From Trichosphaerium sp. ATCC 40318 (Eukaryota > Protista > Tubulinea), in contig JALMLS010000056.1 of the NCBI GenBank assembly GCA_038496445.1, positions 310,001-374,000 of the forward strand: DNA of 64,000 nucleotides. The letters are read 5' to 3'. The notes below the pieces were generated by a model. The model worked only from the letters and a program-made list of their open reading frames with translations. It ran no database searches and was not told the origin of the DNA. Both the position numbers and the translations under genes were made by a program. This document shows positions 2,801-49,684 of this stretch, in pieces. The first letter of the stretch is position 1; every line of letters begins with the position of its first letter.

Positions 2801-5800
2801 TTACATTATTGAACATTTTTTGTCTACCTTGTCATTCTTCATAATACACTCTTCAATAACCTTTCCTTCATAATCCCATCTCTTATAGTCTCCCTCTCTT
2901 TTATCATTAACATAATTGCAAACAATTTCACGTTTTCCACCTCTGAAGAACACTTCATACTTGCCTAACAAAAAAAAACCACATAAGCAACTGAAGCACA
3001 CATGTGTGCTTTAAACACAAAGAAAACAAAACAAAACCAAAAAACAAAAACACCATCTCAACATCATATAGAACGCCTTTTGCGCTGGTTTGTCATACAC
3101 ATGAAGCAGACACGTGGAGTAAAACAAAAAAAACGCAAAAAAGTTTCAAGTTTCTACGTACCGTTGATCATGCCAAGTGTCTTATGACATCTTGTAAAAG
3201 GTGTACCATCTTCCCACAAGAACTCATAGTCACCATCTTCCAGATCATTAATATACTGACACTCAACCTTCTTTTGACCACCCTCATAGTAAGATACATA
3301 ATTACCATGTAGAATACCATTTTTGAAATGACAAATCTCCCTAAGGTCTCCATTTTTATACCATCGACGCCATTCACCACGTTTTCTTAATTTTCTATTA
3401 AATCGTACACTAGCCGTAGATTTACATAAAAGAGGCCAGTTCCTGTAAATATTGCTATCCCAGTCCCATATAGACCAGAAGAGCTCAGCAGGCAAAGTGA
3501 GCAACCTTAAACAGAACGTCAGTAAGTCAGGCTTTGACAGAAAAAAAGTTGATGTTGAAAGCTGACTTAAGTGGGGTTGACTTACGAAGGTGTTTTTAGC
3601 TTTAGTCTACGTGCTGAGCTAGGTGATAAAGGTTTAGCTTTAGCAGCAGTTGTTGATACGTCTTCTCCATGAGCTACAATTGTTTCAGAGTTTTCTTCAC
3701 TGAAAAATGCTTCTTCGTCTGATTCGTATACTGCTGCTGGCTTCTTGTCGGTTTTCTTTTCCTTTGTTACAACAGCGGCTTTGTCTTCATCAGCAGATTC
3801 TTGCGCTTTAGCCTCTTCCTCTTTTTTATCACCTTCTACAACAGTGCTTGATGCTACTTGTGTAGTGTCTTGTTCGCCCTGTGTGGCGTTGCTTGCAGCT
3901 ACTTGCTCTTCTGCACGTCTTGCAGCTTCCTCGGCTTCCGCCTTACGTGTGGCTTCGTCTTCCTCAATTTTACGTGCTGCTTCTTCTTCTGCCTTTCTTG
4001 AAGCTTCTTCCTTTGCAGCCTCTTCTGCTGCCAGTTTTGCAGCTGCTTCCTGTCTGCTAGCTTCCTCTTCTGCAACTCGTGCTGCTTCAGCTTCCTCTGC
4101 TTGTACTCTTGCAGCTTCTTCTGCTGCAGCTAAAGCGGCTTGTACAGCTGCCGCCTTTTCAGCTTCTTCTGCGGCCAGGTTTGCAGCTGCCTCTCTGATA
4201 GCTTCCTCTTCTGCGGCTCGTGCTGCTTCAGCTTCTTCAGCCTTTTTTGTGGCTTCTTCTTCTGCTGCAACTCGAGCAGCTTCTTCTTCAGCCTTCCTTG
4301 CAGCTTTCTCTTCTGCTACAACTCGAGCAGCTTCCTCTGCTTCTTTCGCCGCTTCTTCTGCTTCAACCTTCTTTTGTTCAAATTCCTTTTGTTCTAATGC
4401 AGAACGCCATACTGACTGAATCTCTGTAACATTCTTTTTTTGTTCTTCAAGCTTATTGGCTTCAACAGTACCTCTCCAACATGCCTTTAATACAAACAAT
4501 TAAAATCTCATACCAGACAATTAACACTAAGGTGAAGCTCTTACCTGTATTTTTACAACATCGTTCTTTGCGTTTTGGAAATCACCACGTGCTTTGAATC
4601 CACGCCACGATTTCTACAATCAAACGTCAGATTTTTTTTGTCCTTTGTGCAAGTGTAAAACGTACTTGAATGGCTACAGCAGCGTTTTCGTTCCTTTTTG
4701 AGTCTTCTTCCTCTTGTTGTGCTTTAGCTGCTTCTGCATCAGCATCTGCATCTGCTTCTGCTTCTGCTTCTTCTTCTTTAGGTAGTTCAACTGGAATGTC
4801 TTCCACAGTTGCTTGAGGTTCAATTGCGCTATCGTCAACGCGTTCTGGTGCAACTTCTTCTGGTGATTGTGTATCTTCCTTTTCATCTACCACTGCGTTT
4901 TCTTCTACAGCAATTGCTGGTTCTGTAGCAATTGCAGAGGCATCTTCTACAGCAGTAACGGAAGCTTGCATGTCAATATGATCTAGAACGCCGTCTTCGT
5001 CGTCTTCTACTTGCGGTGTATCTTTTGTGTCGGTTACTTCATCAGCGATCTGTGCCGTTTCGTTTGTGTTCACATTATCTTCTTGTGCATTATCGTCTGC
5101 TTGTTCGGCCGTTTCTGGTTCTGGTGGGTTTGATACGTCTTCAACAGCCTCATTTGCTTCTGTAGACTCTGTTGGAGAAGCAGGAGGCGCACCAAAGAAG
5201 ATATCAGTGTCTAACACCTTGGCAGTGCTAATTTGAGGTGTTCCACTTTTATTAGCATTTCCGTCCTTTGGGGAGTCAATAGAAGGCTCTTCTGTAGGTA
5301 GATCCTGTTGAAACATAAACGCGTTGGTTTTTTTTTGAGTAAACTTGAAAATGGTTGAAGAGTTTTTGACGTTAAGCTGTACTTGATAAAGTGGAAAAAG
5401 TATTAACGTACATCTTGGTCTTCTTTTACATCGTCTTGTGGCGGTTCGGGTATTTCGGAGAGGTTCATCTAAATTTGGTTCAACAAAGGTTATAAATGTT
5501 TTAGAGTGGCGTAAAAGGTAGTATACCTCTTTAAGTATGATATCTATTACTTCTTTGAAGAGAGATAAATCGTCAAGGTTCGCTTTCGCGCCAATGAGAA
5601 AATCTAGTCCTTCTTCGTATTGGTTCAACTCAACGCACGCTACACGAGATTAATTACACTTTTGATTGAAGTGTTTAAGAGAAAGGCATTGAAAAACTTT
5701 CTGTACCCTCAGCACCACGGAAGTAACCCTGAGATAGTGGTGAGAAGAGTTTTTATTAAGTTTTTGCGGTTTTACCTTTATCCACTTTTGATCGCGTTCA

Positions 5801-11933: not shown

Positions 11934-14900
11934 ATGCTGATCGCATGGTGTCTACTCTTCGTTTTTGGGGTACATGGACAGGCTATTGATGATTTAGGTA
12001 CCCAACGGATTTGTTTGTACGTACAACTAGGCCTGATAGCAATAGCAAAGGTGTCTCAGCTTCAGGTTCATACTTCGGATCACGAGCACTACTCCGTTCA
12101 TTTTGAAGCGATTGGAAAATCTTGGGACATAATACTCTCAAGAAACACATATAATGTACTGTATTTGCTATATTATAAGTGTAACGAAACAACAGGTGGC
12201 TTTTCAGAATTTTAGACGCCTAACATACGAAAATAACTGTTTCCTTGGCCGCTTACAAGACGAAAACGGCTATCAAGGCCAACTAGCGGCGGTTCACGCT
12301 ACAATTGTTAAAGCACGCTATAAAAGTACTAATAACGCTTACAAATATAAGGGCATCATAGAAAACGCTTTGATATTCTATGGGGGTGGTGACTATGCGA
12401 TATCTACCAAAGGTAAGTGTTATAACATCACCACAAAAAAAAATCAAAAGAAAACTCTTAACGCGCACGTGATATTCTAGATGGTTCAATTGGTGATCCA
12501 TCTTCTCTTGTTATTTATTCGCATACACCTATAAGGACAATACAGGCAACACCATTATCTCGTCCAGGTGATTTACGAAACGCCTCTTCTCTGTTACTCA
12601 CTTGAATGATTTTAGTTACTTTGAATGGGTTTGGTTACGGGTCGAGTAAGAGACAAATACCCCAAACAGGTAATCATATATTTTGTTTTTGGAAAAATTT
12701 TAAAATAAGCCAACACCTTACAGGTGAAAGGCCTGGGATACCGTTTCCTTCTATAGATATATTCATTGATGAAGCTTTTATTATGCAACAAGGTGGAGAG
12801 CAGGTAGGAAGAAAATACTCACAACACGTGCAATAAACAAATCTGATAATTTTTTCAATGTAGAACGCTATTGATGTCGCTACTGCTGCTATTGACCAAG
12901 CTAATCTTATTTACTTGCAATCGAATTTAACAGATGTAATAGATTACCTGTTATCTAGTGAATGCTAATTTTCTGTTCCAGACTATTTTTGTTATTCGTA
13001 GCTTTAATGTTATCGACACTGGAATGTTTACTTCACCTGTGGATTCTTTAACGTTGATAAATTGGTAAGTGTCATTTTCGCGCTACTGATTTTCTTTAAT
13101 GTCTTACACCGTGTCAGGTTCGCAGATGTAAAAGAACAAGAAGTTCTGATAGATTCCTCAGATATTTGGTATCTATTTACTGGTTTAACATTAGAAGGTA
13201 TTGAGCCTACAAACTTTACGTTTTAATGATATTGGTAACAGGTACTTTTGGCCAATCTTTTATTGATCAAGCGTGTTGGATGAGCGTCCAACAAACAATC
13301 GGTTTTAGATCTAGGTGGCAGGTAAATAAAAGCAGCTTTGCTACTTTTATTAATAAGTTTAACTAGTCAAACGTTAAATTTTCAGTGGGTATTCAATCTC
13401 ATTTAGAATTTCCAATAGACAGGTACAAGTGTTTGTTACCATCTTTCATATGTGTTCTGACTTTATCGTTTTAAACCTTAGAGCTTTGATAACTGCACGT
13501 CTTTTAGGTTTCATAATGGGTGGTGATTCTACACCTGGTGATCCAATACTAGGCACAACTGTGACACTAGGTACACGTGGGTACTGGAGTTTAAAATAAC
13601 CAGGGCTTAGGTTTGCCTATTTCATCATATGTTTTCACTTGTGCTGCTAGAGAGCAAGTAAGCGTTGTTTTCTTATATTATAAACTGTTAACATGTTATA
13701 GATGCTTCGCACATGCTGCGTCTCGCTCGTTTTTATACCACCATCTTTTGTGCCAGACTTTCTTGATAGATATTCTTGTTCTGATGATAGAGACCCTTTG
13801 TAAGTTGGCAACACTATATCCTATTTCAAAACTTACCTCTGTTTAGCTGCACGCCTCCCCCATCCATTCCTCCAGTACCCTATAGTACATTAAATTATTA
13901 CGCCTAACCATTAATAGCCGGTGCTTGTTACTCCGCCACCAAGTGTACCACCAACGGATGCTCCAACTGAAGAGCCAATAGTACATATTATCCTTGTAAA
14001 TAAAATCTCACATCGACTATAGTCGCCTACGACGTTACCACCGACCACCACACCACCAACAATGGCACCAACATTGCCACCAACTACACAACCTCCAGTC
14101 ACTGCTCCCCCAACAACTGCTAGCCCAACTACTGTACCACCCTCGACGATTCCACCAGTAGTTGCGCCAACGCTAGCTCCTATAACTCAACCTCCCACTA
14201 CGACAAGTCCTACAACGGTAGCTCCAACGGCGACGCCCACTACTGCGCCACCCACGACATCAGCTCCTACAACATCTGCACCAACTGTAGCACCTACTAC
14301 AACCTCACCAACAACTCTTATACCAACTACAGCTCCACCTACAACACAGCAACCTACTACAGAATCACCTACTACGTTGCAGCCAACCACTTCAGCTCCA
14401 ACAGTTACACCTTCAACAGCGCCACCTACAACACAACAACCTACTACAGAATCACCGACTACGTTGCCACCAACTGAAGCGCCTACCATGCCACCCACTA
14501 CTCTATCACCAACTACACTTTCGCCAACAACGATGCAACCAACGACTTTAGCTCCAACAGTCGCACCTACAACGACACTACCAACTACGCTTTCGCCGAC
14601 AACGTTGCAACCAACGACTTTAGCTCCTACAATAATTCCTACAACATCACCACCCACTACAACACCACCAACGTTACAACCAACAACCCTTCCGCCAACA
14701 ACTCTGAGTCCAACAACAATTGCGCCTACTTTATCCCCTAGTACGCTACCACCAACTACAGTAGCGCCCACAGCGCCTACAACAATCGCTCCTGTACCTC
14801 TAGTTCCTTTTGCACCTACGACGGTGCCTCCCACCACAACTGTTCCTACTACGGGAGTACCTGTAGAGCCCACAGAACCTCCTGTCGTACCTACAAACGC

Positions 14901-16249
14901 TCCCACGATTTCTCCAACTACTGAGGCGCCAACAGATGCTCCAACTGAAGCACCAACAGATACTCCAACCGATGCGCCCACAAATGCACCCACAGATGCT
15001 CCAACTGAAGCACCAACAGATACTCCAACTGAAGCACCAACAAATGCACCCACAGATGCTCCAACTGAAGCACCCACAGATACTCCAACTGAAGCACCAA
15101 CAGCTGTACCTACAGGTACATACTCAACGTAGTAATCCGTCTTCTTATTATTTTCAGATGTACCAACCGAAGCACCTACTAATACACCTACACCTGAGCC
15201 TACTAACCCTCCATCAGAAGCGCCAACTCCTATGTTAGTACCTACAGAACCTCCAACAATACTAGTTACCAACGCTCCTACGACATTACCAATAACAGAA
15301 GCGCCTACATTAGAACCAACTGAAACACCAACTATAGCGCCCACAGAACAACCTACAATTGCCCCAACATTAATTCCTGTGACACTTGAACCTACGACAT
15401 CACCAACGCTTTCTCCAACGGTATCACCAACACTTACACCAACCGATGTGCCAACTTCCGTACCAACAGAGCCACCAACACTAGCACCCACAATTCCACC
15501 TACAGTCACTCCCACACAAACACCGACAGATTCACCTACGCTCGTTCCAACAATTGCTCCTACTGAAGAGCCTACGATCGCACCAACAAACGTGCCTACA
15601 GAAATACCAACAGCATCTCCAACAGACGTGCCAACTGACGCACCCACATTCGTGCCCACAGGCAAGTCACTTTAAATATCTGTGCTGTACATAACATGAC
15701 TCTAGATTCTCCAGTAATTCCATCTGCGGTACCTACAGTCGTGGCAGTGCCTTCTATTATACCTTCAACCGTTGCACCTGCAACCACAACTCCTTCTGCA
15801 GCACCAACTATTTCTCCAACTGAAGTAGTTCCAACTACAGAAGCGCCAACAATTGCGCCTCCACCTACAGTACCTCCGTTAGTGCGTGATGGGCCGGTAA
15901 GTAATTGCTAATTAACATACACGTGATTTAAATTTATGTTAGTCTACGGCTATTGTACCTGGAAGAGGCTACTCCAGTGGAGTTCACTGCACGCGACAAG
16001 ATGCAGTTAATGAAGCGCTCGTTACTGCTCTTGAGGGATGTACAACGTAAGTTCTGTGTATCCACTCTGTTCTTCTATTTTAACCTTGGCTGTAGATTAT
16101 GTTCTAGTCTGAACTTTGTACCTCCCACACCTCAAGCTTGGCGGTGCATTCCTATAAGCGGTACCAAGGTATCAACCAGCCTTCCGTTTCCATGCCCAGG
16201 AAGTGTTTTTGTATATGAAGCATTCGTTAGTTGTGTTTGCAACTGTTAA
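11934..16249 (+). CDS. Secreted reprolysin/ADAM (M12B)-like protein, probably catalytically inactive, with a long Pro/Thr mucin stalk and a Cys-rich C-terminus
   Basis: Signal peptide MLIAWCLLFVFGVHG. Prodomain-like VHFEAIGKSWDIILSRN...NCFLGRL. Dibasic site SKR. M12B-like IDIFIDEAF, DQANLIY, DIWYLFTG and GQSFIDQAC. The zinc-site position reads TARLLGFIMG. Then PT repeats, ending SCVCNC*. Confidence 0.7.
14020..15880 (+). repeat. Coding low-complexity Pro/Thr (PTEAPTDT / PTTLAPT) repeats, including near-perfect 60-bp tandem units around 14930-15110
   Basis: Repeated ccaactgaagcaccaacagatact...cccacagatgct units. The translation is a PT/mucin repeat. Confidence 0.9.
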
Positions 16250-34409: not shown

Positions 34410-35096
34410 ATGGAGTGCCTAACAAGCAATGAAAAGAGAGCTACCGAAAAATCACATGTTTGCCATGTATTACTCCTTCCCTACGAGATTCAGCTTGATA
34501 TTATGGATGTAGACGCCTCAGTGTATTCAGCTTGGCCACTTCTTTCAAAACAGACGGCAACGACCACAAGGTTTGATATTGAGATGAAAAAACATGGAAA
34601 ATGGCATAAAAATGGTCAAGTGCGCTGGCAATGCCATTATGTCAATGATAAACATGAAGGAGAGTACAAGAGTTGGTATGATACTGGACACATTTTGTTG
34701 CGGTGTACTTATGTCAATGATAAACGAGCAGGCAAGTTTATGTTGTGGTATAGCAATGAGCAATTAAATATTGAATGCAATTATATCAATGGTACACGCG
34801 AAGGAGAGTACACAGTTTGGTACTTAAATGGCCAAATGAAAGAGCGCAAGTACTATATCAATGGTGAACTTGATGGGAAGTGTAATGAGTGGCATGACAA
34901 CGGCTCACTGAAAGTTCAGTGTAATTATACCAAAGGCGTTTTCACAGGAGTGTACAACAGTTGGTTTAGAAATGGACAGATGAACGCATACTACAATTAT
35001 GTCAATGGTGAATTTGAAGGAGAATACAGAGTTTGGTCTATTGACGGCACATTGGTAGAGCACTACAACTATGTCCAAGGTAAACGATGTAAATAA
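34410..35096 (+). CDS. Intronless F-box-like + MORN-variant (YwqK-like) repeat protein
   Basis: LLLPYEIQLDIM...WPLLSKQ followed by ~24-aa repeats of the form GEYxxWYxNGQLxxxCxYxNG. The 228-aa ORF is uninterrupted. Confidence 0.85.
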   Translation: MECLTSNEKRATEKSHVCHVLLLPYEIQLDIMDVDASVYSAWPLLSKQTATTTRFDIEMKKHGKWHKNGQVRWQCHYVNDKHEGEYKSWYDTGHILLRCTYVNDKRAGKFMLWYSNEQLNIECNYINGTREGEYTVWYLNGQMKERKYYINGELDGKCNEWHDNGSLKVQCNYTKGVFTGVYNSWFRNGQMNAYYNYVNGEFEGEYRVWSIDGTLVEHYNYVQGKRCK

Positions 35097-39650: not shown

Positions 39651-40421
39651 ACAAGAAACACGTCGGTTGTGTATCGAAATCATTCATTTTTTCTTTTGGA
39701 ATACACGACGTTACCGACTGTCGAAAAAAAAAGATGTGTTGACTTTTTTTCAAGTTAATGTAATAAAAAGTTTAACGAAAAGCAGACTGAGTTTTGTTGA
39801 AATCGGCAACCTTTTTGACTAGCAACATTTCGCTTTTCTCAAACAACTTATTCCATGGCTATGCTGTCAAACTGCCAGCTACTGTTGAGTTCATGGTAGA
39901 CACCACCATGTGGCTCAATAACTTGTTTTAGCACTCAGATATGCAGGTGCGAATAGGATGACGCTTGGTATTATAAAACTATAGTCAAGGTGCTAGGGAG
40001 TACAACCAACGAAAAATTAACAACGCCGCTTCCTCACTGCGAGGCTACATTTTTTTATTACTATGGCAAACGTCTAAAAGACACAGTCGTCACATTATTT
40101 GTCACGATGATGAGGTGCGAGGTACGAGTTTTAGTTAAGTATGTTTATATTAATGTTACATTGTAGTTATCGTCACATTATTAGCTATTAGTTTTCTCTG
40201 GAGATGAATTCTAGATGAGGGAATAAACAAACTTATACCTGCTTCATTCACTAGTAGTCCATGAAAGCCATCAACTTCGTAGACAGTTCAAGGCTCTATG
40301 TCTGCTGTAACTCGGATGACTATGAAGCAAAAAAATCTCATAATATGTGACTTTGGTGGAGGCGCAAGGTATTGATTGTCTGCTAATGGCTTGAAATATC
40401 GGCTTGGCTAAATGGAATAAA

Positions 40422-40466
40422 GGACATGCACGGGTTTGTTTATTTTTTTTACGAAATCTTTCGAGA
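40422..40466 (+). repeat. Left terminal inverted repeat
   Basis: GGACATGCACGGGTTTGTTTATTTTTTTTACGAAATCTTTCGAGA, 42/45 identical to the reverse complement of 47695-47739. Confidence 0.95.
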
Positions 40467-40508
40467 ATATACGTAACTATTCGAAGGTTTCCGAAAAAAC
40501 CCGAGTGT

Positions 40509-41506
40509 TTATTCATTAGCAAATACATGGCTCCATGGGCCCACAGGCAAGTACCGTACTCTTTGCTTAAGTACTATGTTTGACAGGTGTGCAGTGACAT
40601 ACAAGCAAGCTTGCAACAACTCTATTCGGCCCCGAAAGGGTGTTTGGAACATAGTGTGAGCAGTAAAGTACCCGTTGATGTGTTCAACACGACCACGATA
40701 GTGTTGCATAATCACGTTGAAGTACAGCTCATCACAGGTAAGTAGCACTCCTCTTCTACAGCGAAATGGAACAATACAGTGTCCACAGCCTTTTCCTATG
40801 TAAGCTCCATCTATTTACTATTAGTACATCCCAAGTACACCTCCCTAACCTGCTAAAAATGCTTCCCAAGGCTCCATAGGATGCAAAGTGTCTGTATCCG
40901 CCCATATCTTGTTATCTGTTTTAGTGCCAAGGTGTGGTCCTGAAAACACAATGATCCGACCAAGAAAGTCAATACCAAGTTGTACCTTTACCACACAGTT
41001 TGCGTACTTACCAGCATACACCCGTGAGCGTATGATACACTTACTTGGTTTGCGTATTATTATTGGGAACGTATCGATAATTCCCGTAACGTATTTTGGA
41101 AAATACTCGCCATGGTTAAACGGATTACTATACAAATGGTTAGCCCTTGAAGATGCTAAGCTATCGTACAGGCGAGACGACCAAGATATTTCTTTGAGCA
41201 CAAGTGATAGATAGTGCAATAACGGTATCAAACGCTCTCGCAATGAGTCTTGTGACTCTCCAAACAAAAACATTTGTCTTGTGGTTGGGTATACATGAAT
41301 GTACAATAAAGCGCTGAACAAGTCACGCTGCACGTACATTGTACCTTACAAAAGGGTTAGCGCGATGTTTTGTCGCAAACGGCGCACATACCCTTAACAT
41401 AGCGCTTCCAAACGTACTTCAGTACCCAACGTGGATACCCTGTTGCAGCGTGCGTTTTAGCATCTGAAATATCATCAAAGGTGAAACTATTGCGCGGTTT
41501 GTTCAT
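40509..41506 (-). CDS. DDE transposase (DDE_Tnp_4 / Harbinger-ISL2 family) with N-terminal HTH
   Basis: Spliced ORF (2-3 introns): AATGYP, LFSALLYIHVYPT...FG, GIIDTFPI (D), YAGKY..VVKVQ...GRIIVFSGPHLG..TD, FLA|DGAY (D) and RGRVEHING (E). No disabling stops seen. Confidence 0.92.
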
Positions 41507-41530
41507 TTTGAAGGTTAAGCGAGTGATAAA

Positions 41531-42124
41531 ATGGAACGCGAAGACGAATACTGCATACCGCCGTTTGTTCCTATAAGCAACACTGAAGTAGTTGTGCGTG
41601 CATTTTTGAATCAACAAATAGGTGGTGAAAGCATCGGGCAGCTACTGTGGAAAGGAATGGTAGAGAAATGGCGTACAATACAAAGACCGGAAGCCATCCT
41701 ACCGCTTTTTGCAGAAGTGTATGACCACTCAAAAGCAAAACCGCGTACAAAGGTGCCTACTGTGGGATCTCTTGTAAACAGGAAGAAGGTAGACGGAACA
41801 GACTTTTTGTTGCTTGTGTTGAGCAAAGATAATGTACGAAACTGATTGTAACGGCTAGTACTGACCGCTAAGGTATTTGAGCAATTGGATACAGAGCTTG
41901 CCAATCAGAAAAAAAGTGGTGTTGCTGACTCGGACATGCAATCACTGGATTACTTTGATACTGAGTTGCGTGACGTGTTGCAAAGCATCATACAGCGTGT
42001 ACAACGCTTGGAAGTGGTTCCTGAAAATGATATTGACGCCACACAAGAAGAAGAAATGCGTAAGCAATTTGTATTTCGCGATAATTTGGACACCAAACTG
42101 TTCAAGTGGAAAAAAAGATACTAA
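41531..42124 (+). CDS. Transposon-borne ORF2, unknown function (~184 aa, 2 exons)
   Basis: ORF 41531 is spliced (GTACGA...CTGAC...TAAG) in frame to VFEQLDTELANQ...KWKKRY*. AATAAA overlaps the stop. Confidence 0.75.
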
Positions 42125-42148
42125 ATAAACTGAGTTGTTGACACATCT

Positions 42149-43743
42149 TTATTGGTATTCATCCGATGCAAATGAGCCGTCAGAAAGTGGTTCATCAGAG
42201 TAATCTTCATACGATGCACTAGCACTTGAGTCATGATCAGAAGAAGGACCAATAACACTATCAATGATGGGCGTACTAACCATAGAACGAAAGTGACCTT
42301 GCTCTTGCCTTTGTTTTGGTGGTATAACAGTACCAGGAATACAAGAGCTAAGGTGACGAGCTGATCCACTCTCATTGCGGATGTGGCTTCTGGAGTCTCC
42401 AGGAGTGTTGTGAGGAAGAACTTTTCGTTTCCGCCTGTTTTTTCTTCGCTCATGTACTTCAGCTCTTATATCACGAGGCTCTTCACTCCTACTATTTTGT
42501 CTACTTGGTACATAGGATGAAAGCGTACGCGGTGGTGGTGTATATGCTGTAGAACTGTCATACGGTGCTTGTGATGGGTTCGGGTTGGGAGAAATAGGCG
42601 ATAAGGGTATATTGGCAAAGTGCATTGGAGAAGGCATTGGAGAAGGCGGTGGAGAAGGATCTAGCCCATGAAAACGCCTTCCTGATATTAGTGTACCCAT
42701 ATTAAAGTCCTTTGGTACTACTCTGGGATGTACTGGTTCCGTTGACTGTCTGGGGCGAGGTCGATTTGAACGAACTCTTGAAACTACATTTTCCACTTCA
42801 TCAATGCGAGTATTATGTGCATTTGAAGCAAGGTCGATGTTTGGGTTTCGCGTAGAAGCACCTACAAAAATATCTTGGTCACCACGCATGTGCTCTTCTG
42901 TGTTGTCACGTTGCTCATCTATCAAACTACACAATGAGAGAAATGGTACAACAGCTAGTTAAGTAAACGTACTGTAACTCTCTCACTCGTTCTCTAAGCT
43001 CCCTTCCAAGTATTATTTCATTGCAAGGGTTAAAAGCAGGTTCTATTCCTTGAGTATGAGTCTCTGCTATAAAGTGAATGAGCGTGTATGCTTTTCGTCT
43101 AGATGCCTCTTGTGACACTTGCAATGTGTCAAAAAATAATCAAGTAAATAAGCGCAAATAGCGTACATAATGGTTCAGGTCTTGGTTGTTCGCTAGCCAA
43201 GCGTTGTAATATTGCCATAAGACTAATACATTGTACGTAATTGAAGTGTCCCTCCTCTATCTTTTTTTTGGTTTCCAAAAAGTGCTGAATGTTAGTTTGC
43301 GGATCATTTGCGACATCAGGAACTTGTCTACGTAAATATTCTGCAGCAGCTCCACGCCCTTGCCTACGAGCATTTGCTATAAGCGTCTAATAACAATAAG
43401 TACGTGGACAATATTGTGTGTTTACCTGTCGCATAACGATTGTATACTCTTTGCTCAATGCGCGTGGTGGAAAGCGTTTGTACCCATTTTTATCAGCAAA
43501 TATTGGGGCTATCTTTGTCCATTGCATAGTCTTGAAGTCTCCAATGCCTTTACGACAACGTTTTTTGTTCAGTGCCTTTTGCGCTTCAGATACCCACACG
43601 CACTCTCGTTCACTCATACTTTTGAATTTAGCTCCGCTTGGGTTTTTTTCAGTCGTTTGTTTGTAAAAGTGGCCTTTGCGAATAGCGTATGCTATGTCAA
43701 TATGCATTTGTGTGTAGTAGTCATTCTGTTGCACTGCTGCCAT
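42149..43743 (-). CDS. Transposon-borne Myb/SANT(trihelix)-like DNA-binding protein with disordered Pro/Ser-rich C-terminus (4 exons)
   Basis: MSERECVWVSEAQKAL...MQWTKIAPIFADKNGYKRFPPRALSKEY fits a Myb/trihelix pattern. Three short introns join it in frame to the 42149-42934 ORF, which has an NLS-like RRKNRRKRK. A Myb partner protein is the norm for Harbinger elements. Confidence 0.7.
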
Positions 43744-43803
43744 CACTTGCACAGTACTTGCAAAGTGCTTTTTCTGCTAAAAAATATTACCATACGCAAG
43801 CGG

Positions 43804-44180
43804 GATTTTAAAAGCACTTCAAAAGCACTTTGGAAGCACTTTAAAAGCGCTTACAAAGTACTTTGCAATCACGAAGAAAAACATTTTGGTTGTGAGAGAA
43901 AAAGTTTGTCGGAGCGGAAAAAACCCAGCGAAGCAGATTTTTAAAAGCACTTTAAAAGCACTTTAAAAGCGCTTACAAAGTACTTTGCAATCACAAAGAA
44001 AAAACATTTTGGTTGTGAGAGAAAAAGTTTGTCGGAGCGGAAAAAACCCAGCGAAGCAGATTTTTAAAAGCACCGTAAAAGTGCTTTTGAAGCGCTTTAG
44101 AAGTACTTATAAAGTACTTTGCAATCACAAAGAAAAACATTTTGGTTGTGGGAGAAAAAGTTTGTCGGAGCGAAAAAAAA
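43804..44180 (+). repeat. Three tandem ~123-132 bp units, each with 4-5 copies of an 11-bp subrepeat (core AAGYRCTT) plus a conserved ~70-bp block
   Basis: Units start at 43804, 43936 and 44059. The shared block is GCAATCAC..AGAAAAACATTTTGGTTGTG.GAGAAAAAGTTTGTCGGAGCG. Confidence 0.92.
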
Positions 44181-44518
44181 GTGCTTTTATTGTACTTTAT
44201 CACCACTTCCGAAGTGCTTTGTAACCACTTTGAAAGTAGTTTTAGCGAAGAAAAACAATAAAAGTGCTTTGCAAGTGCTTGTGAAGTACAAAGAAAGTGC
44301 TTTACCGCTGAAGTGCTTTTTATTGTTTGTCGCCAACTCTGTAGTTTTAGCACGTACACCATACCTTGCAAGCGCTTTTAAGAACTTCACGGAAATAGCT
44401 ATCTACAGCACACATAAAGCATATATTACATACTGTGATCGAGAAGCTCTTTGCAAATGAAATGTCTTAGCGAAAGTGTTGTTGACGGATTTTTGTTACA
44501 ACAATACAATTTGTTTAT

Positions 44519-45620
44519 TCAACCAAAAAATCTGGCATACAGGTAGTTAAGTGGCGAGGTAAGCTGTTGTTCGTCTTCTACTGCAGTAGTATTTGGTGTA
44601 TCTGGTATTTCTTCCATACTCTCACTACGTGGGCTACCTTGTGGAATGAATAGAGAATGTTCTGACATTTCATCAGTATTTAGCGTGCTTGCATCTCTTG
44701 CTGTTTCAACGCTGTTGTTTCTACGTGAAAGAACTTCCTTCAGCTCCTCCACAAAAGATTCTATAGTTTCCTCCACAACAGGCAAGGTGTCATCCATCAC
44801 CTCCTCTACAACTGATGCGCTATCAGTGGAATCCGTCAACTCCTCAACAACTTGTGTGTTATCAACAGAATCCTTTACCTCTCTGAGTGGCTCAAAATCA
44901 ACAGAATCGCCCGACTCATTTGTAGCTGGTGAGTGTGCTTCAGCATCATCAGAATGCATCGAGTCCACTCGTTCAAGGAGGTTATCCAAAGAGTTTATTA
45001 GTTTTTCTGACGCTAAAAACAAAATAAATAATACTGTCAGTAAACGTTGTGATTTTCTTACGTGTGCTTGGAATAGGCTGTCTTCGGATACTTGAAGCAC
45101 CGCTGATAAAGCCATCTCGAGTGTTGATTAGCTCTCTAACACCATCTCCCTCGTGAGTAGCATAGTCAGATGCATGGCTTTGAACATGCCAGTTGATGTC
45201 TTGTAAGGTGATGTTGGTAAGCGGTTCTCCGTTGATAGTGTACCCTTCCTCTAGTATAGTGTAGAGCTTTTCTTGTTCCCACATAGACGCTCTAGCTTTG
45301 AACCAAGCACTTAACCTTTCCCGATCAATAGTGGCGCCAAAAATGTGCTGAACTACAATCGCAATGGCTGACCAATAATACAAGCAATCGTCCAGGTCGT
45401 AGTTTTGTAACGCAAAAAACGTAAACTCCCACAGCGTTTGTGTCATTTCACTAATAGCGGGCAGGTTTCGCAACAACAAGTGCTTGCGATTCGAGTGTAC
45501 ATCTATCCATGCTATTTGTTCTGTCACATAACGAAGTAGTAGTGGCGGATAAGGCTCGTGTATGTTCAAACCAATGAATGTCAGTCCGATACGACACTCG
45601 AAGGTTAGACTAGGCTCCAT
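44519..45620 (-). CDS. Transposon-borne ORF4, unknown function (helical N-terminal domain, acidic C-terminus; 2 exons)
   Basis: ORF 45620 (MEPSLTFEC...) is spliced via GTAAGA...CTGAC...TTTTAG to SEKLINSLD...ARFFG*. AATAAA follows the stop. Confidence 0.75.
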
Positions 45621-45673
45621 TTGTGTGTCAAAGCAAGTATTTTAGGGAAAAAAAGCTTTATTATTTATTAGCA

Positions 45674-47645
45674 ATGGAACGCACTCCACCACGCATTCCA
45701 GATGAGGTACTATTGCTGCGTTGGTGCAACTAACAATACTAGGAACCCAAGTTTTTAAACGTTCTTAGGCGTACACCAACACGCGTCAAGGGTAGCTCGC
45801 AAGCAAAACAGAGGACAAACAAGCTCATAGACCTATTCACAGTAACTCAAAAAAATTTATAATATCATCTTTACCCTACTAGGCGTCACACTCCTTGATG
45901 CCTTGTTCGGAAGTGCCCAGAGGAGCTTTTGTCATGTTTTTGGACAATGAGGACCTTTTTTATGGCTATGCATTCTTTTTTCGAAATTACTTGTACACTG
46001 TTTGTTTCCTTGACAACGGTGTGATCCAAAAAGCAGTGCCCTTACAAGTAAGTTGATAACCAACAACAATACGCTCACTAGTTTATAGATAGCGGTGTGT
46101 GTGTGCTTAGAATACCCTGTTATGACAATGCCAATGAATGCATGCTTTGAGCATTTTTCTACTATTGTTGAGCCCGAGTACACAGATTACCCAATCCCAA
46201 AGATACCTAAAGCCACGCTAGCCATGGTTTATAAGGTATTGCTACAAGTGAACAGCCAAGGGTTAAGTTATACACGTATGTTGCACTTACTTGCGTTCAG
46301 AAGCCCAGAAGATGTTAACAACTTGCTCAGTACGTACTTATAGCTCACTTACACTCACATCTTCTAGGTTCCGAAAACATACCGTTGTGTAACCCACCAA
46401 CAGAATCGCATTCAAAGGCAACAAGCTTTGTAAGGGAAAAACACAGCAATCGTACACAACGTGAACAACCACGAAAAAAGAAAAACCAAACATCAACAGC
46501 AGAAAAACGGCGTTTACGCAGAAATGAGCCTAAGGAGCCATCAAGTGACGAAAGCACAAACGACAATGCTACTTATTACCCTAACAGTGTCGATACAAGC
46601 AGTACGTTACTATTCTCCTTCATTCCGCTAAGCAGCTAAGGTGATGACTGCAGTGTATCATTTGATGAAGAGACTGACAGCGAGGGGTCAACCGATCCAA
46701 TAGAGCCACGTGCGTTCATTCATCTATTATTTTTATAACGTTGCTTTAGGCAAGTGGAACAATGAGAGTATTATTAGTTATGCAAGTGCAATTCGCTTGT
46801 TGAGGCGTGTGTGTGTTGCTGGTACTGATAGTGATGAAGCAGCACGTGTGCGAAGGATGATACAACAAGAACGTAATGCCAGAAAGAAACTCACAGCCGA
46901 AGAGTTAGTAGAGTGTTATAAGTCTGATGAAACTGATGTCAAAAAGTACGTGCTACTTGTCTCCTGTAGTACCATTAATCATTCAAAGGGTGGTCAGGGA
47001 GTGCTTTAAGCAAAGGCGAGCTCATACAAAGAAGCGCACACAACGTTCAAGGGCAAAAAAAACTCGTAGAAGGTAAAATTTTAATATCTAGTGAAGGGCT
47101 AACACTTATGAAGAAGCAGAGTAACGACACGCCAAAAGCAACAGCCTGTGACTTCACAATTGCCTGAGATACATGACTTTAGCAATCCAAAGTTTGGTAG
47201 GCAAGTTTCTTATGGGGCAATGGTTAGCCAACAAGCCTTACATCCAGAAATACGCATGGATGTAAGGTGCAGGGGCTCTAGTCACAACCTTAGTCCAGCA
47301 TCCTCGTCTAGTAGCAATAATTTGATGGTACCTGCTAACACACCGTCACCGTACTTCGACCCTTATGCCCCTGCAAACGATGAGTCCTCGTATCCAAATA
47401 ATAGTGCCATGGCGCCTATAAATCCTGGTACTTATGCTCCTGTAGCTCATAGTACACCTGCACTGACTGAACCATCTAATAATAACCGTGAACCTATTAC
47501 AAACGCTGGTCCTACACACAGTACACCAGAACAACTCAAGATTACAAACAGGAAACTAAATTTTAGTACTACTGGCAAAAAGGTATGGACAGCAGATAAC
47601 AAAAAGGGGAATGTAGCAGCTTTGCGTGATCGCTTCAATAAATAA
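45674..47645 (+). CDS. Transposon-borne ORF5, multi-exon, with a Tudor-like segment, NLS-like basic stretch and disordered tail
   Basis: ATG at 45674. Exons join in frame through GAFVMFLDNEDLFYGYAFFFRNYLYTVCFLDNGVIQKAVPLQ|IAV, PRKKK...KRRLRR and GKWNNES..., ending RDRFNK* with AATAAA. The 3' junctions are less certain. Confidence 0.7.
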
Positions 47646-47694
47646 TAATCATTACTCGTGAAATCTCGGATTTATTCGTTTTTCGTACGAAAAC

Positions 47695-47739
47695 TCTCGA
47701 AAAATTTCGTAAAAAAAAGAAACCAACCCGTGCATGTCC
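47695..47739 (-). repeat. Right terminal inverted repeat
   Basis: The reverse complement reads GGACATGCACGGGTTGGTTTCTTTTTTTTACGAAATTTTTCGAGA. Confidence 0.95.
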
Positions 47740-49684
47740 AAACAAAGTCAGCCAAAATGGCTCAAATGACTTTTTTTTCACGCGCATCACCAGATTTTTC
47801 CTTCATTTTTAAATCCCTTGCCGTTGGTAGTGTCTTCAAAGCTACCTAATACAGTCTTGCTGTTAAGACGTTTAGTAGTCATAATAGGTTTGGTAGTTGA
47901 TGCACATGCACATGGAATAAAGTTGATAAGCCAAGCCGTATGTCAAAAAAAGGTTGCTCTGAGCCACTAGAAAACAATCACTACGGATCGTCTTGCGAGT
48001 GCTTGAAAGCAGAGCACAAGATTTTGTGAATGTATGCTTTATCAAATATCTCCATTGGGACGATTTTTGTATGCAGTTCACACCTCTCATATTAATGATT
48101 TTGCGTATGTGAAGGTACTCCTAGAATGGCTAGCTCCATTGTTAAGATCTAAGTGTAAAATAAATTATTTACTATTTTACGAGTTTTTTTGTGGTTTTTG
48201 TTTTGACTTAACTAAAAAAGCACCAACTGAGCTTCACTGACCACAAACAGATGATTCAAGGCTTGTGTCACCATATAAAGTGCTTGAAATGCAATTCACG
48301 GGTTATTGGCAAAAACAGAGCATATGCTACCAAAATACGAGGGCGTTTCTATAAAGTACCTGCAAATGACGTTTATCGCACGGAAAACGCTGAAAACGTT
48401 AGTTTGAGGCATAAAGAATGAAAGAAAAGCGAGTTCCCAAAATTAACAATTACACAAGCTTTGACAAGCGTTTAAATTACAGAAGTGTCACCTAATGCTA
48501 TTTGTCATGTATTGAGATTAGTTTTAAGCTTGTCGAGCCTTGTGTAATTGATAAATTCCAATATTCTGCACTAGTGGACACTAAGCGATTTTTGGAATTA
48601 AATACCTCAAGAGCTAATTGACCATCCCACACTTTTCATAGTGATAGTCAATATGTGTGGTATTACACAGTGTAATTTATAGCAATAGTTGATGGAGTGT
48701 AGTGACACAGTTTCTTTGAACCTGTTTTTGGTAAATCCTGAAGTATCTCCATTCGAAAACTAAGTTCTGTCTCTAAAACCCCTATAATGGTAAATCATAA
48801 TTACATCAAGCTTTGTGGCTATCTGGTGCAATAAAGTACCCAAGCAAGAGTGAGTTTTTTGACATTTTCATGTAAATATTATGTTCAACAACTTCTTTGA
48901 AAAAGAAACCTCTGTATTTTGATACCAAAATTATCAAATACGCTATAACTGTGCATAAGTGCATCATGATTTATTGAGCACCTGACACCAAAAGGAAACA
49001 TTTGAAAAAGGTTTTTGTGGGTTAGAATGATTGTTCAAAAGAACCACCAATTGACAACAATCAGGTATAGAGACAGGTGACGATAGCTTTATGTGGTACA
49101 CTGAAAGTGATAAAAAATGCATTAAACGAAAGAATGTAATCCTTACTCATCATAATGTAAAAGACTTACCTGCAAAACATGGTGGTGGTAGAGGATAAGA
49201 ATATGATCCCAAGCAGAAATAACTCAGTTTTAGTTTCAATGAAATAGTTGATTGAAGCACACTATTAATTACCAGCAAGTTCTGGTTAATAAATATTATA
49301 GACACATATGCGTTCTGAAGTATACTCAAAAATTGGACATAAATAACGTTTTTGAGGTGTCCTAGAATTTTCTTGAAAGTGTGAACTGCTTACAAAAATC
49401 GTCCCTTATAATTTCTGTAAGGTACCAATCGAACGCGATGCTCTTTCGTCACGGCTTTCGTCTATCGAGTGCAGTGTGTTCTAAAAAAAGTTGTCAAAAC
49501 AAATCATACTGGTTCTGCAGTATTTTGTTACGCTGTCTATTGGAATGAGAGGTAGGAAATGCTTGCTTGTGCTCGGTATTTGTTACGTTATTACGTTGTA
49601 TGCGGTGTAAAGTGTTGAATTCGTTCCAGCTCCCTTTTGGGAAATGAAGCACAAAGAAGTAGAAAAAAGACAATTTTTTTCAAA

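Follow-up and report, generated by a model that had tools for sequence, protein, structure and literature searches.

The transposition of PIF/Harbinger elements involves two proteins, a transposase and a Myb-like protein, ORF1, which binds an element's terminal inverted repeats (TIRs) and also imports the transposase (PMC2836001), and this two-protein requirement has also been described in a second account (PMC4482050). Target sites differ among the groups of the PIF/Harbinger superfamily (PHIS), with TWA used by PIF/Harbinger and ANT, CWG or TNA by other groups (PMC4482050). Pangu/Harbinger2 elements produce an ANT duplication, average ~3.5 kb and hold two ORFs, of which one encodes a transposase with a DDE domain only and the other is motif-less, and their TIRs begin with AG or GG (PMC4482050). 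The ISL2EU elements carry a YqaJ exonuclease gene and are flanked by 2-bp AT duplications (PMC4482050). Three-gene Harbingers have been published as well, namely HarbingerS of oomycetes, which carries a SET methyltransferase, and PHISTA of rust fungi, which carries a TET/JBP gene and a third, non-Myb protein (PMC12730594). Given these cases, the view of the initial annotation that Harbingers encode just two proteins is incomplete.

Structure of the element

The transposon considered here spans 7.3 kb (40422-47739) of a 64-kb stretch of DNA from Trichosphaerium sp. ATCC 40318, termed the window, and is read from its sequence as a structurally intact copy. Its features are as follows, those without a strand being unstranded.

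40419-40421: left flanking AAA, putative 3-bp target-site duplication, identical in sequence to 47740-47742
40422-40475, + strand: left TIR, beginning GGACATGCACGGG, paired as an inverted repeat with the right end
40509-41506, - strand: transposase gene, spliced model of 3 exons (41506-41392, 41344-40850, 40810-40509), 303 aa
41531-42124, + strand: ORF2, spliced model of 2 exons (41531-41833, 41873-42124), 184 aa, orphan
42149-43743, - strand: putative Myb/SANT-like gene, spliced model of 4 exons (43743-43426, 43386-43167, 43117-42973, 42926-42149), 486 aa
43745-44380: internal repeat array, with periods of 123 and 11 in tandem-repeat analysis
44519-45620, - strand: ORF4, spliced model of 2 exons (45620-45062, 45012-44519), 350 aa, orphan
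45674-47645, + strand: ORF5, spliced model of 9 exons, 550 aa, orphan
47686-47739, - strand: right TIR, paired as an inverted repeat with the left end
47740-47742: right flanking AAA, putative target-site duplication, from sequence reading

The TIR arms are 54 nt each and 89% complementary, and 3 mismatches fall in the first 45 nt, which reproduces the 45-bp repeats of 42/45 identity first reported and lengthens them. Beyond the arms, a degenerate likeness of the two ends, in the form of similar subterminal motifs, runs to ~80 nt. Across the whole window, the terminal 20-nt pattern is found at these two ends only, where 0.01 occurrences would be expected by chance. The shared part of the flanks is AAA, with t as the fourth base in one flank and c in the other; an AT dinucleotide duplication is absent. 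The AAA had been annotated as a 3-bp duplication, and its presence on both sides stands; its interpretation as a target-site duplication is plausible but statistically weak, because it rests on one copy and the flanks are A-rich. Taken as the target, AAA would depart from the TWA of canonical PIF/Harbinger elements and equally from the ANT, CWG or TNA of the other PHIS groups (PMC4482050), a point against the assignment.

Between the TIRs lie five complete reading frames, which are open once 15 GT-AG introns of 36-49 nt, chosen in all five gene models so that the frames stay open, are removed. Most of these introns contain branch sites of the CTAAC/CTGAC type. From left to right, the transposase gene (leftward) and ORF2 (rightward) form one head-to-head pair with their ATGs 24 bp apart, followed by the leftward Myb-like gene, the array, and a second head-to-head pair of ORF4 (leftward) and ORF5 (rightward), whose ATGs are 53 bp apart. 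This is the order originally described, and 77% of the element is coding. Intergenic and gene-to-TIR gaps are 24-53 bp, the exception being the 775-bp region with the array, and the outermost genes stop 33 bp and, for ORF5, 40 bp short of the TIRs. AATAAA overlaps or abuts the stop codon in all five genes (offsets -9 to -1), as had been noticed, versus 10 of 285 ORFs (3.5%) with AATAAA within -9..+12 of the stop in the background outside the element, which speaks for five separate transcription units.

The transposase and its clade

By sequence, the transposase is a DDE_Tnp_4 (PIF/Harbinger/IS5-type) enzyme. The Pfam family DDE_Tnp_4 matches exon 3 at E 0.011 and exon 2 at E 6e-6, the latter exceeding the gathering score. 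The catalytic triad, D129/D204/E246, is complete only after splicing, with intron 2 splitting the D204 codon. Residues 22-298 align with the full-length relatives P0005 and P0006 at 39-42% identity, and comparison with intronless relatives confirms both introns, one such relative (L002) aligning colinearly over both splice junctions. Exon 2 retains all 20 residues that are invariant across nine clade members. With its TIRs, DDE_Tnp_4 matches, triad and five open frames, the locus bears out the annotation of an apparently intact Harbinger-type TIR transposon.

The transposase falls in a clade of small enzymes of about 280-345 aa (P0002-P0024), found only in metagenome or SRA contigs (JGI/Logan, from soil and other sources, with two NCBI contigs) and in a single transcript of Physarum polycephalum (P0021), at 36-47% identity. 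This identity extends over the full 280-300 aa, and an N-terminal TGYP..VL..W..Y motif and a DFLGRIIxFSGPHLG core are common to the relatives and the element's enzyme. The relatives P0005, P0008 and P0004 match DDE_Tnp_4 at E 1e-16 to 1e-11, and weak NCBIfam IS5 matches also occur among the clade members. Several relatives have intronless transposase genes, whereas that of the element has two introns.

A partner gene appears to be usual in this clade, as judged from the three contigs with usable upstream DNA (L004, L005 and L006), in each of which one partner ORF lies head-to-head with the transposase. The N-terminal regions of these partners are helix-turn-helix-like by eye and Trp-rich in L004 and L005; Pfam names no family for any of the three, and they differ from the proteins of this element in lacking detectable sequence similarity to them. 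In the present element, it is ORF2, a gene devoid of recognisable features, that occupies the position taken in the relatives by the putative DNA-binding partner.

Among described groups, the canonical PIF/Harbinger elements (Ping/Pong, Harbinger3_DR) resemble this one in their DDE_Tnp_4-type transposase, TIRs starting with GG, 3-bp flanking repeat and additional gene that encodes a DNA-binding partner, putatively Myb/SANT-like. They differ in having two genes in about 3-5 kb, as opposed to five in 7.3 kb here, and in their TWA target, where this single copy with A-rich flanks reads AAA; the transposase here is also short (303 aa), and the Myb domain of its partner is undetectable by Pfam. Pangu/Harbinger2, to which the element is likened by description, shares a transposase with no domain besides DDE, an accompanying ORF free of known motifs and TIRs beginning with AG or GG, but its ANT duplication differs from the AAA flank of this single copy, as do its smaller average size and its two ORFs from the 7.3 kb and five genes here. 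HarbingerS and PHISTA likewise carry genes beyond transposase and partner, although the additional genes here number three or four and are without a recognisable domain, SET and TET/JBP giving no Pfam match on any element exon scanned, and PHISTA duplicates TA. ISL2EU elements also belong to the PHIS superfamily and have a DDE transposase related to the one here. The ISL2EU-type identity initially assigned is not supported, because YqaJ has no Pfam match on any element exon scanned (E up to 1-5) and the repeat at the flanks measures 3 bp instead of 2 bp.

Remaining genes and the repeat array

The Myb-like protein consists of an N-terminal domain and, after it, a long tail rich in Pro and Ser. 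In a protein-language-model atlas, Myb/SANT-like families make up nearly all of the named neighbours of its exon 1 (scores <=0.81), including Myb_DNA-bind_3/4/5 and MADF clusters (scores <=0.76), and the aromatic residues W50, W75 and Y100 lie ~25 residues apart, a spacing that fits a Myb-like repeat. No Pfam Myb family matches any of its four exons at E<=1 to 5, a phmmer search of the PDB with exon 1 returned no match, and single-sequence AlphaFold, unreliable here at pLDDT 54, gave no three-helix bundle. The "Myb" label given earlier is thus weakly supported, with the low-scoring neighbours and the aromatic spacing in its favour and the Pfam, PDB and fold results adding nothing.

ORF2 has nothing significant in Pfam and no meaningful neighbour in the protein atlas, the best score being 0.46. 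The ORF4 protein comprises a helical N-terminal region of ~186 aa and an acidic tail (63 D/E), is modelled by AlphaFold at pLDDT 44, and has no match in Pfam or the PDB. In protein databases that do not contain the proteins of this genome, no ORF4 homologue was found among 5.8 billion clustered proteins within the allowed length range, and a search of 1.84 billion representative proteins gave no relative for its N-terminal domain. The only match of ORF4 among these representatives, a bacterial repeat protein, was rejected as spurious. The ORF5 protein has a basic N-terminus, K/R-rich and disordered stretches, and a hydrophobic segment (exons 3-4) that is probably folded; Pfam gave no match on exons 3, 4, 5, 7 or most of exon 9, nor did the PDB on exons 3 and 4.

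The array, which lies between the ORF4 stop and the Myb-like ATG, downstream of the former and upstream of the latter, holds ~2.8 copies of a 123-bp unit with 89% matches, and each unit carries runs of palindromic AAGYRCTT motifs, mostly 11 bp apart. Of the 33 such motifs in the window, 21 fall in 43745-44380, and their density outside the element is 0.18 per kb. Because AAGYRCTT is absent from the element termini, the array would not be a transposition site.

Origin and possible roles of the gene set

We judge, with slightly better than even confidence, that the element is an intact copy of a PIF/Harbinger-superfamily cut-and-paste transposon in which ORF2, ORF4 and ORF5 travel as accessory genes. 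The transposase would excise the element and insert it at a 3-bp target and, by analogy with other PIF/Harbinger elements, would probably need an element-encoded DNA-binding partner for end recognition and nuclear entry, a part for which the Myb-like protein of 486 aa is the leading candidate. The three genes ORF2, ORF4 and ORF5 may be fast-evolving ones carried along outside the catalytic machinery. The predicted make-up of each, in which a short N-terminal fold precedes a long tail that is acidic, basic or of low complexity, would be more in keeping with adaptors for protein-protein contacts or chromatin than with enzymes. For the array with its palindromes phased at 11 bp, the most likely role is that of a binding platform, predicted to regulate the Myb-like gene.

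Alternatively, the family may be a two-gene Harbinger-like one in which two or three host-derived or new genes ride along without serving the element, an account that we regard as possible but on the unlikely side. The related contigs look simpler, with a transposase and one divergent partner, although further genes could well lie outside contigs of such limited length, and no homologue of ORF2, the Myb-like gene, ORF4 or ORF5 was detected in the seven related loci examined, all of them under 4 kb. Moreover, L004, at ~3 kb and with inverted repeats of ~80 nt, may be an entire element with two genes, in which case the extra genes would be a late addition, and since ORF2, ORF4 and ORF5 are without detectable relatives or domains, nothing ties them to transposition. 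Captured genes in pack-type elements, however, are usually fragments, whereas the extra genes here are all complete, each with a start, canonical introns, a stop and a polyadenylation signal. They are packed flush with each other and with the TIR, GC content is even across the element at 0.41, and the remaining 57 kb of the window contains no host paralogue of any element ORF. Furthermore, in the related contig SRR26457796, ORFs that share one strand and diverge from the transposase take up 2.5 kb, so that larger gene loads may be frequent among clade members.

It is improbable that the right half of the element, comprising the array, ORF4 and ORF5, is another mobile element or host DNA trapped between Harbinger ends, even though the sole long non-coding stretch, the 775 bp with the array, divides the transposase-ORF2-Myb block from an ORF4-ORF5 block with which it shares no sequence similarity. 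An inverted-repeat search of the element found no second internal TIR pair except the array itself, and no duplication surrounds 43.7-47.7 kb. The ORF5 stop lies so near the right TIR that there is no space for the terminus of another element, while the TIRs match over at least 54 nt with similar motifs to ~80 nt, and the style of introns and of stop/AATAAA is alike in all five genes. Finally, that the extra ORFs are chance open frames joined through intron choice is very hard to credit, for although the introns were selected to keep frames open, homologues were not found and protein-language-model recognition scores are low, the 8 introns of ORF5 are all GT-AG and 36-43 nt long and join nine exons into 550 stop-free codons, introns of the same type have been verified in the transposase through homology, AATAAA stands at every stop as against the 3.5% background, and GC1 is higher than GC2 in each of the five genes.

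Beyond the reading of an intact transposon with travelling accessory genes, it may tentatively be suggested that it stands for a multi-gene Harbinger-superfamily lineage of a protist that is as yet undescribed. In such a lineage a minimal transposase, a fixed set of four fast-evolving proteins and the array would form a copy-conserved, self-contained module; the window itself holds no further copy. If this proves true, the module would serve regulation, targeting or anti-silencing, and its set would comprise a DNA-binding partner, a chromatin-reader-like candidate in ORF5, an acidic adaptor in ORF4 and a small coiled-coil protein in ORF2.

Ends, gene models and compaction of the element

The ~7.3-kb element (40422-47739) is bounded by terminal inverted repeats (TIRs), between which five genes are predicted.

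Terminal repeats and predicted genes of the element
40422-40475: left TIR, 54 nt, 89% complementary to the right TIR
47686-47739: right TIR, 54 nt, 89% complementary to the left TIR
minus strand: transposase (Tnp), 303 aa, 3 exons
+ strand: ORF2, 184 aa, 2 exons
minus strand: "Myb" (putative Myb/SANT-like partner gene), 486 aa, 4 exons
minus strand: ORF4, 350 aa, 2 exons
+ strand: ORF5, 550 aa, 9 exons

The TIRs had been described in the initial annotation as 45 bp long with 42/45 identity, and a count of three mismatched positions in the first 45 nt agrees with this. Beyond the TIRs, a degenerate similarity between the ends extends to ~80 nt, with CGAA/TTCG and CCGAG motifs in common. Within the 64-kb window, a 20-nt terminal pattern (≤3 mismatches) is found at both element ends only, against 0.01 occurrences expected by chance. 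The trinucleotide AAA lies at either flank, while the bases further outward are not the same; these flanks fit a 3-bp target-site duplication, for which a single copy in A-rich surroundings is weak evidence. When the element and the proteins of its five genes were compared by BLAST with the remaining window, neither a further copy or fragment nor a MITE or host paralogue came up. GC content inside the element is uniform at 0.41, and neighbouring bins range from 0.35 to 0.39. Elsewhere in the window, the bin at 14001-16000 has a GC content of 0.49 and a strong GC skew of -0.46, clearly unlike the remaining window, and both of its strands hold long open frames (14023-15672).

Six-frame translation of the element yields open reading frames in pieces, and it is the removal of 15 GT-AG introns (36-49 nt) that produces five complete frames; five intron-containing ORFs with AATAAA at or next to their stops had been proposed from the sequence. 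The introns were chosen so as to keep the frames open, and independent checks are therefore needed. Most of the 15 share a GTA(A/C/T)G donor and a CTAAC/CTGAC/CTAAT-like branch site, and both transposase introns are verified by an intronless relative, locus L002, that is colinear over each junction, including the splice-created FLADGAY motif. GC1 exceeds GC2 in five of five genes; this pattern alone was taken from the codon-usage score, which is confounded by off-frame stop codons. An AATAAA hexamer overlaps or touches the stop codon of all five genes (offsets -9 to -1). Outside the element, the hexamer lies within -9 to +12 of the stop in just 10 of 285 ORFs, and a naive estimate of the chance of its occurrence at 5/5 stops is ~5e-8. 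A 228-codon host ORF with its stop at 35096 is likewise overlapped by AATAAA (35091-35096), and the arrangement may be a general trait of a compact Trichosphaerium genome.

Of the element's length, 77% is coding. Only 24 bp (41507-41530) separate the start codons in the divergent Tnp/ORF2 pair and 53 bp (45621-45673) those in the ORF4/ORF5 pair; gaps so small imply that the 5' UTRs overlap or that the bidirectional promoters are extremely short. Another 24 bp separate the stops of ORF2 and Myb, and the gaps between the outermost genes and the TIRs are 33 and 40 bp.

The transposase and its relatives

Two Tnp exons match Pfam DDE_Tnp_4, with E 6e-6 for exon 2 and E 0.011 for exon 3. The codon of the second catalytic aspartate, D204, is interrupted by intron 2 (40809-40850); thus, the DDE triad exists in the spliced mRNA only, and the predicted transposase would be active only after splicing. 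All 20 invariant columns of a nine-member alignment are retained in exon 2. With this conservation, its homology and the DDE_Tnp_4 matches, the transposase gene looks functional at the sequence level.

A word-indexed search with Tnp exon 2 recovered one relative, P0002, and a two-sequence profile built from the pair extended the set to 23 proteins in total, P0002 included. These derive from JGI metagenomes, Logan SRA assemblies, NCBI contigs and one EukProt transcript of Physarum polycephalum (P0021). They are 36-47% identical to the element transposase, and the full-length members (281-344 aa) align to residues 22-298 of the 303-aa model, with DDE_Tnp_4 matches of E 1e-11 to 1e-16 and faint matches to NCBIfam IS5 models. 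Scans of viral contigs and of prokaryotic genomes gave no match, and a PDB sequence search with the relative P0005 returned none. One further locus from the metagenome scan, L001, is a chance match on a high-GC bacterial contig. Judged by sequence, the transposase is a member of a distinct clade of short enzymes of the PHIS type, the superfamily that joins PIF/Harbinger with related groups. This clade, found only in the Physarum transcript and environmental contigs, appears poorly described.

The contigs bearing these relatives are short (0.6-4 kb), which limits what their gene content can show. In loci L004, L005 and L006, an ORF lies head-to-head with the transposase, ~50-150 bp from its start, and in L002 a divergent gene starts 80 bp upstream. 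The N-terminal region of the partner ORFs in L004, L005 and L006 is helix-turn-helix-like by eye, and in the first two of these loci it is rich in Trp; the tail behind it is acidic or SAM-like. Pfam recognised no domain in these three partners save a sub-threshold SAM_2 in L004, and the L004 partner has no significant similarity to element Myb exon 1 or ORF2 exon 1. L004 (JGI 3300071644) also carries inverted repeats of ~80 nt near both contig ends (L004:46-125 and 2990-3069), between which the Trp-rich/SAM-like ORF and the related transposase are the sole genes, together with a nested insert. L004 may therefore be a complete two-gene element, with no clean duplication seen at its ends. The insert itself (L004:2186-2970) is MITE-like, ~785 bp long, with 63-nt TIRs built of CGCGTAATGCGCG-type repeats. 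In L002, a soil metagenome locus, the intronless transposase frame is broken at a nine-T run (L002:812-824), which is explained either by pseudogene status or by a sequencing error in the homopolymer.

A TBLASTN search of ORF2, Myb, ORF4 and ORF5 against seven related loci, all on short contigs, found nothing at E<0.5, and comparison of the element TIRs with related loci gave no credible match. Larger gene loads may exist elsewhere in the clade, since on a contig from SRR26457796 a related transposase stands divergent from 2.5 kb of DNA with seven ORFs, all on one strand and together 623 aa long. Directly after the stop of the related transposase in L008 stand two tandem arrays of ~15-bp and ~21-bp units (L008:1093-1487), which recall the internal array of the element.

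Non-transposase genes and the internal array

Across nearly all element exons, Pfam detected DDE_Tnp_4 alone, and the scanned exons of the four non-transposase genes gave no match to YqaJ, SET, TET/JBP or any other enzymatic domain. The Pfam, structure and homology searches used single exons, by which intron-split domains (e.g. in ORF5 exons 3-4) could be missed, and the databases searched for homologues contain none of this genome's own proteins. Comparison of the five element proteins among themselves revealed no paralogy. Each non-transposase protein joins a less polar N-terminal part to a long tail that is acidic, basic or rich in Pro/Ser.

For the 486-aa protein, Pfam on all four exons and a PDB sequence search with exon 1 gave no match, and a single-sequence AlphaFold model of exon 1 is unreliable (pLDDT 54). 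Nearly all named neighbours that the protein atlas gave for exon 1 are Myb/SANT-like (Myb_DNA-bind_3/4/5, MADF), at scores ≤0.76 that the atlas grades as leads only, and residues W50, W75 and Y100 have a Myb-like aromatic spacing. The Myb label is accordingly plausible but unproven. ORF4 found no relative in a word-indexed search of 5.8 billion clusters, and a full HMMER scan against 1.84 billion representatives gave a single match, a spurious one, to a repeat protein of Cna-B-like type from a bacterium. Its atlas neighbours are weak and mixed, DUF6818 and Myb-type clusters among them, while its N-terminal region was modelled too poorly for a fold search (single-sequence AlphaFold pLDDT 44) and had no PDB sequence match. 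ORF2 has no meaningful atlas neighbour (best score 0.46). ORF5 gave no Pfam match on exons 3, 4, 5, 7 and 9 and no PDB match on exons 3 and 4; the "Tudor-like" domain suggested earlier for exon 3 likewise went unmatched, the candidate being split by an intron and searched in pieces.

Long non-coding sequence is confined to a single gap, which lies downstream of the ORF4 stop and upstream of where the Myb-like frame starts. This gap contains an array (43745-44380) in which a 123-bp unit recurs ~2.8 times, and every unit holds four or five AAGYRCTT palindromes at 11-bp intervals. This phasing would place the sites on one helix face and suit cooperative binding by a dimeric protein. Of 33 such motifs in the window, 21 fall in the array and none at the termini. 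Owing to this absence from the ends, a putative regulatory role for the adjacent gene seems likelier than one in the transposition complex.

Two proteins are needed for transposition in this superfamily, the DDE transposase and, apart from it, the Myb-like product of ORF1, which binds to the TIRs and associates with the transposase, whose nuclear import it mediates (PMC2836001). By this scheme, the 303-aa transposase would be the catalyst and the 486-aa Myb-like protein its partner, with ORF2, ORF4 and ORF5 as presumptive accessory genes. The latter three may be integral to the element, serving it through regulation, chromatin targeting or anti-silencing, or may simply ride along.

Placement among Harbinger-type transposons

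The element fits the PHIS superfamily in its DDE_Tnp_4 transposase, GG-starting TIRs, 3-bp flank and separate putative partner gene. Its AAA flank, read in a single copy, departs from the duplications of the described groups, which are TWA in PIF/Harbinger, ANT in Pangu, CWG and TNA in Nuwa and AT in ISL2EU (PMC4482050). Of the initial designation as Harbinger/ISL2EU-type, the first half is supported at the superfamily level, but membership in ISL2EU fails on both the YqaJ exonuclease and the 2-bp duplication. In its domain-poor transposase, motif-less partner and GG termini the element resembles Pangu/Harbinger2, a likeness of features. Extra genes in Harbinger-superfamily elements have precedent (PMC12730594): a SET methyltransferase is encoded by HarbingerS, and TET/JBP by PHISTA, whose third protein is likewise of a non-Myb kind. 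Five genes, four of them orphan, would be the largest load among the described Harbinger-superfamily elements found.

Eukaryotic cut-and-paste transposons carry one or two genes as a rule. The few with extra genes, such as the anti-silencing factors of VANDAL elements, SET in HarbingerS and TET/JBP in several fungal families, have revealed ways in which transposons manipulate host chromatin. Were the extra genes passengers of a single copy, the element would represent ordinary gene capture, though unusually tidy. If it does combine four intact, separately transcribed accessory genes with a phased binding-site array, it would widen the picture drawn from these few elements and offer a compact system for testing what a transposon needs besides its transposase. 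The small-transposase clade, in turn, could aid the annotation of protist genomes.
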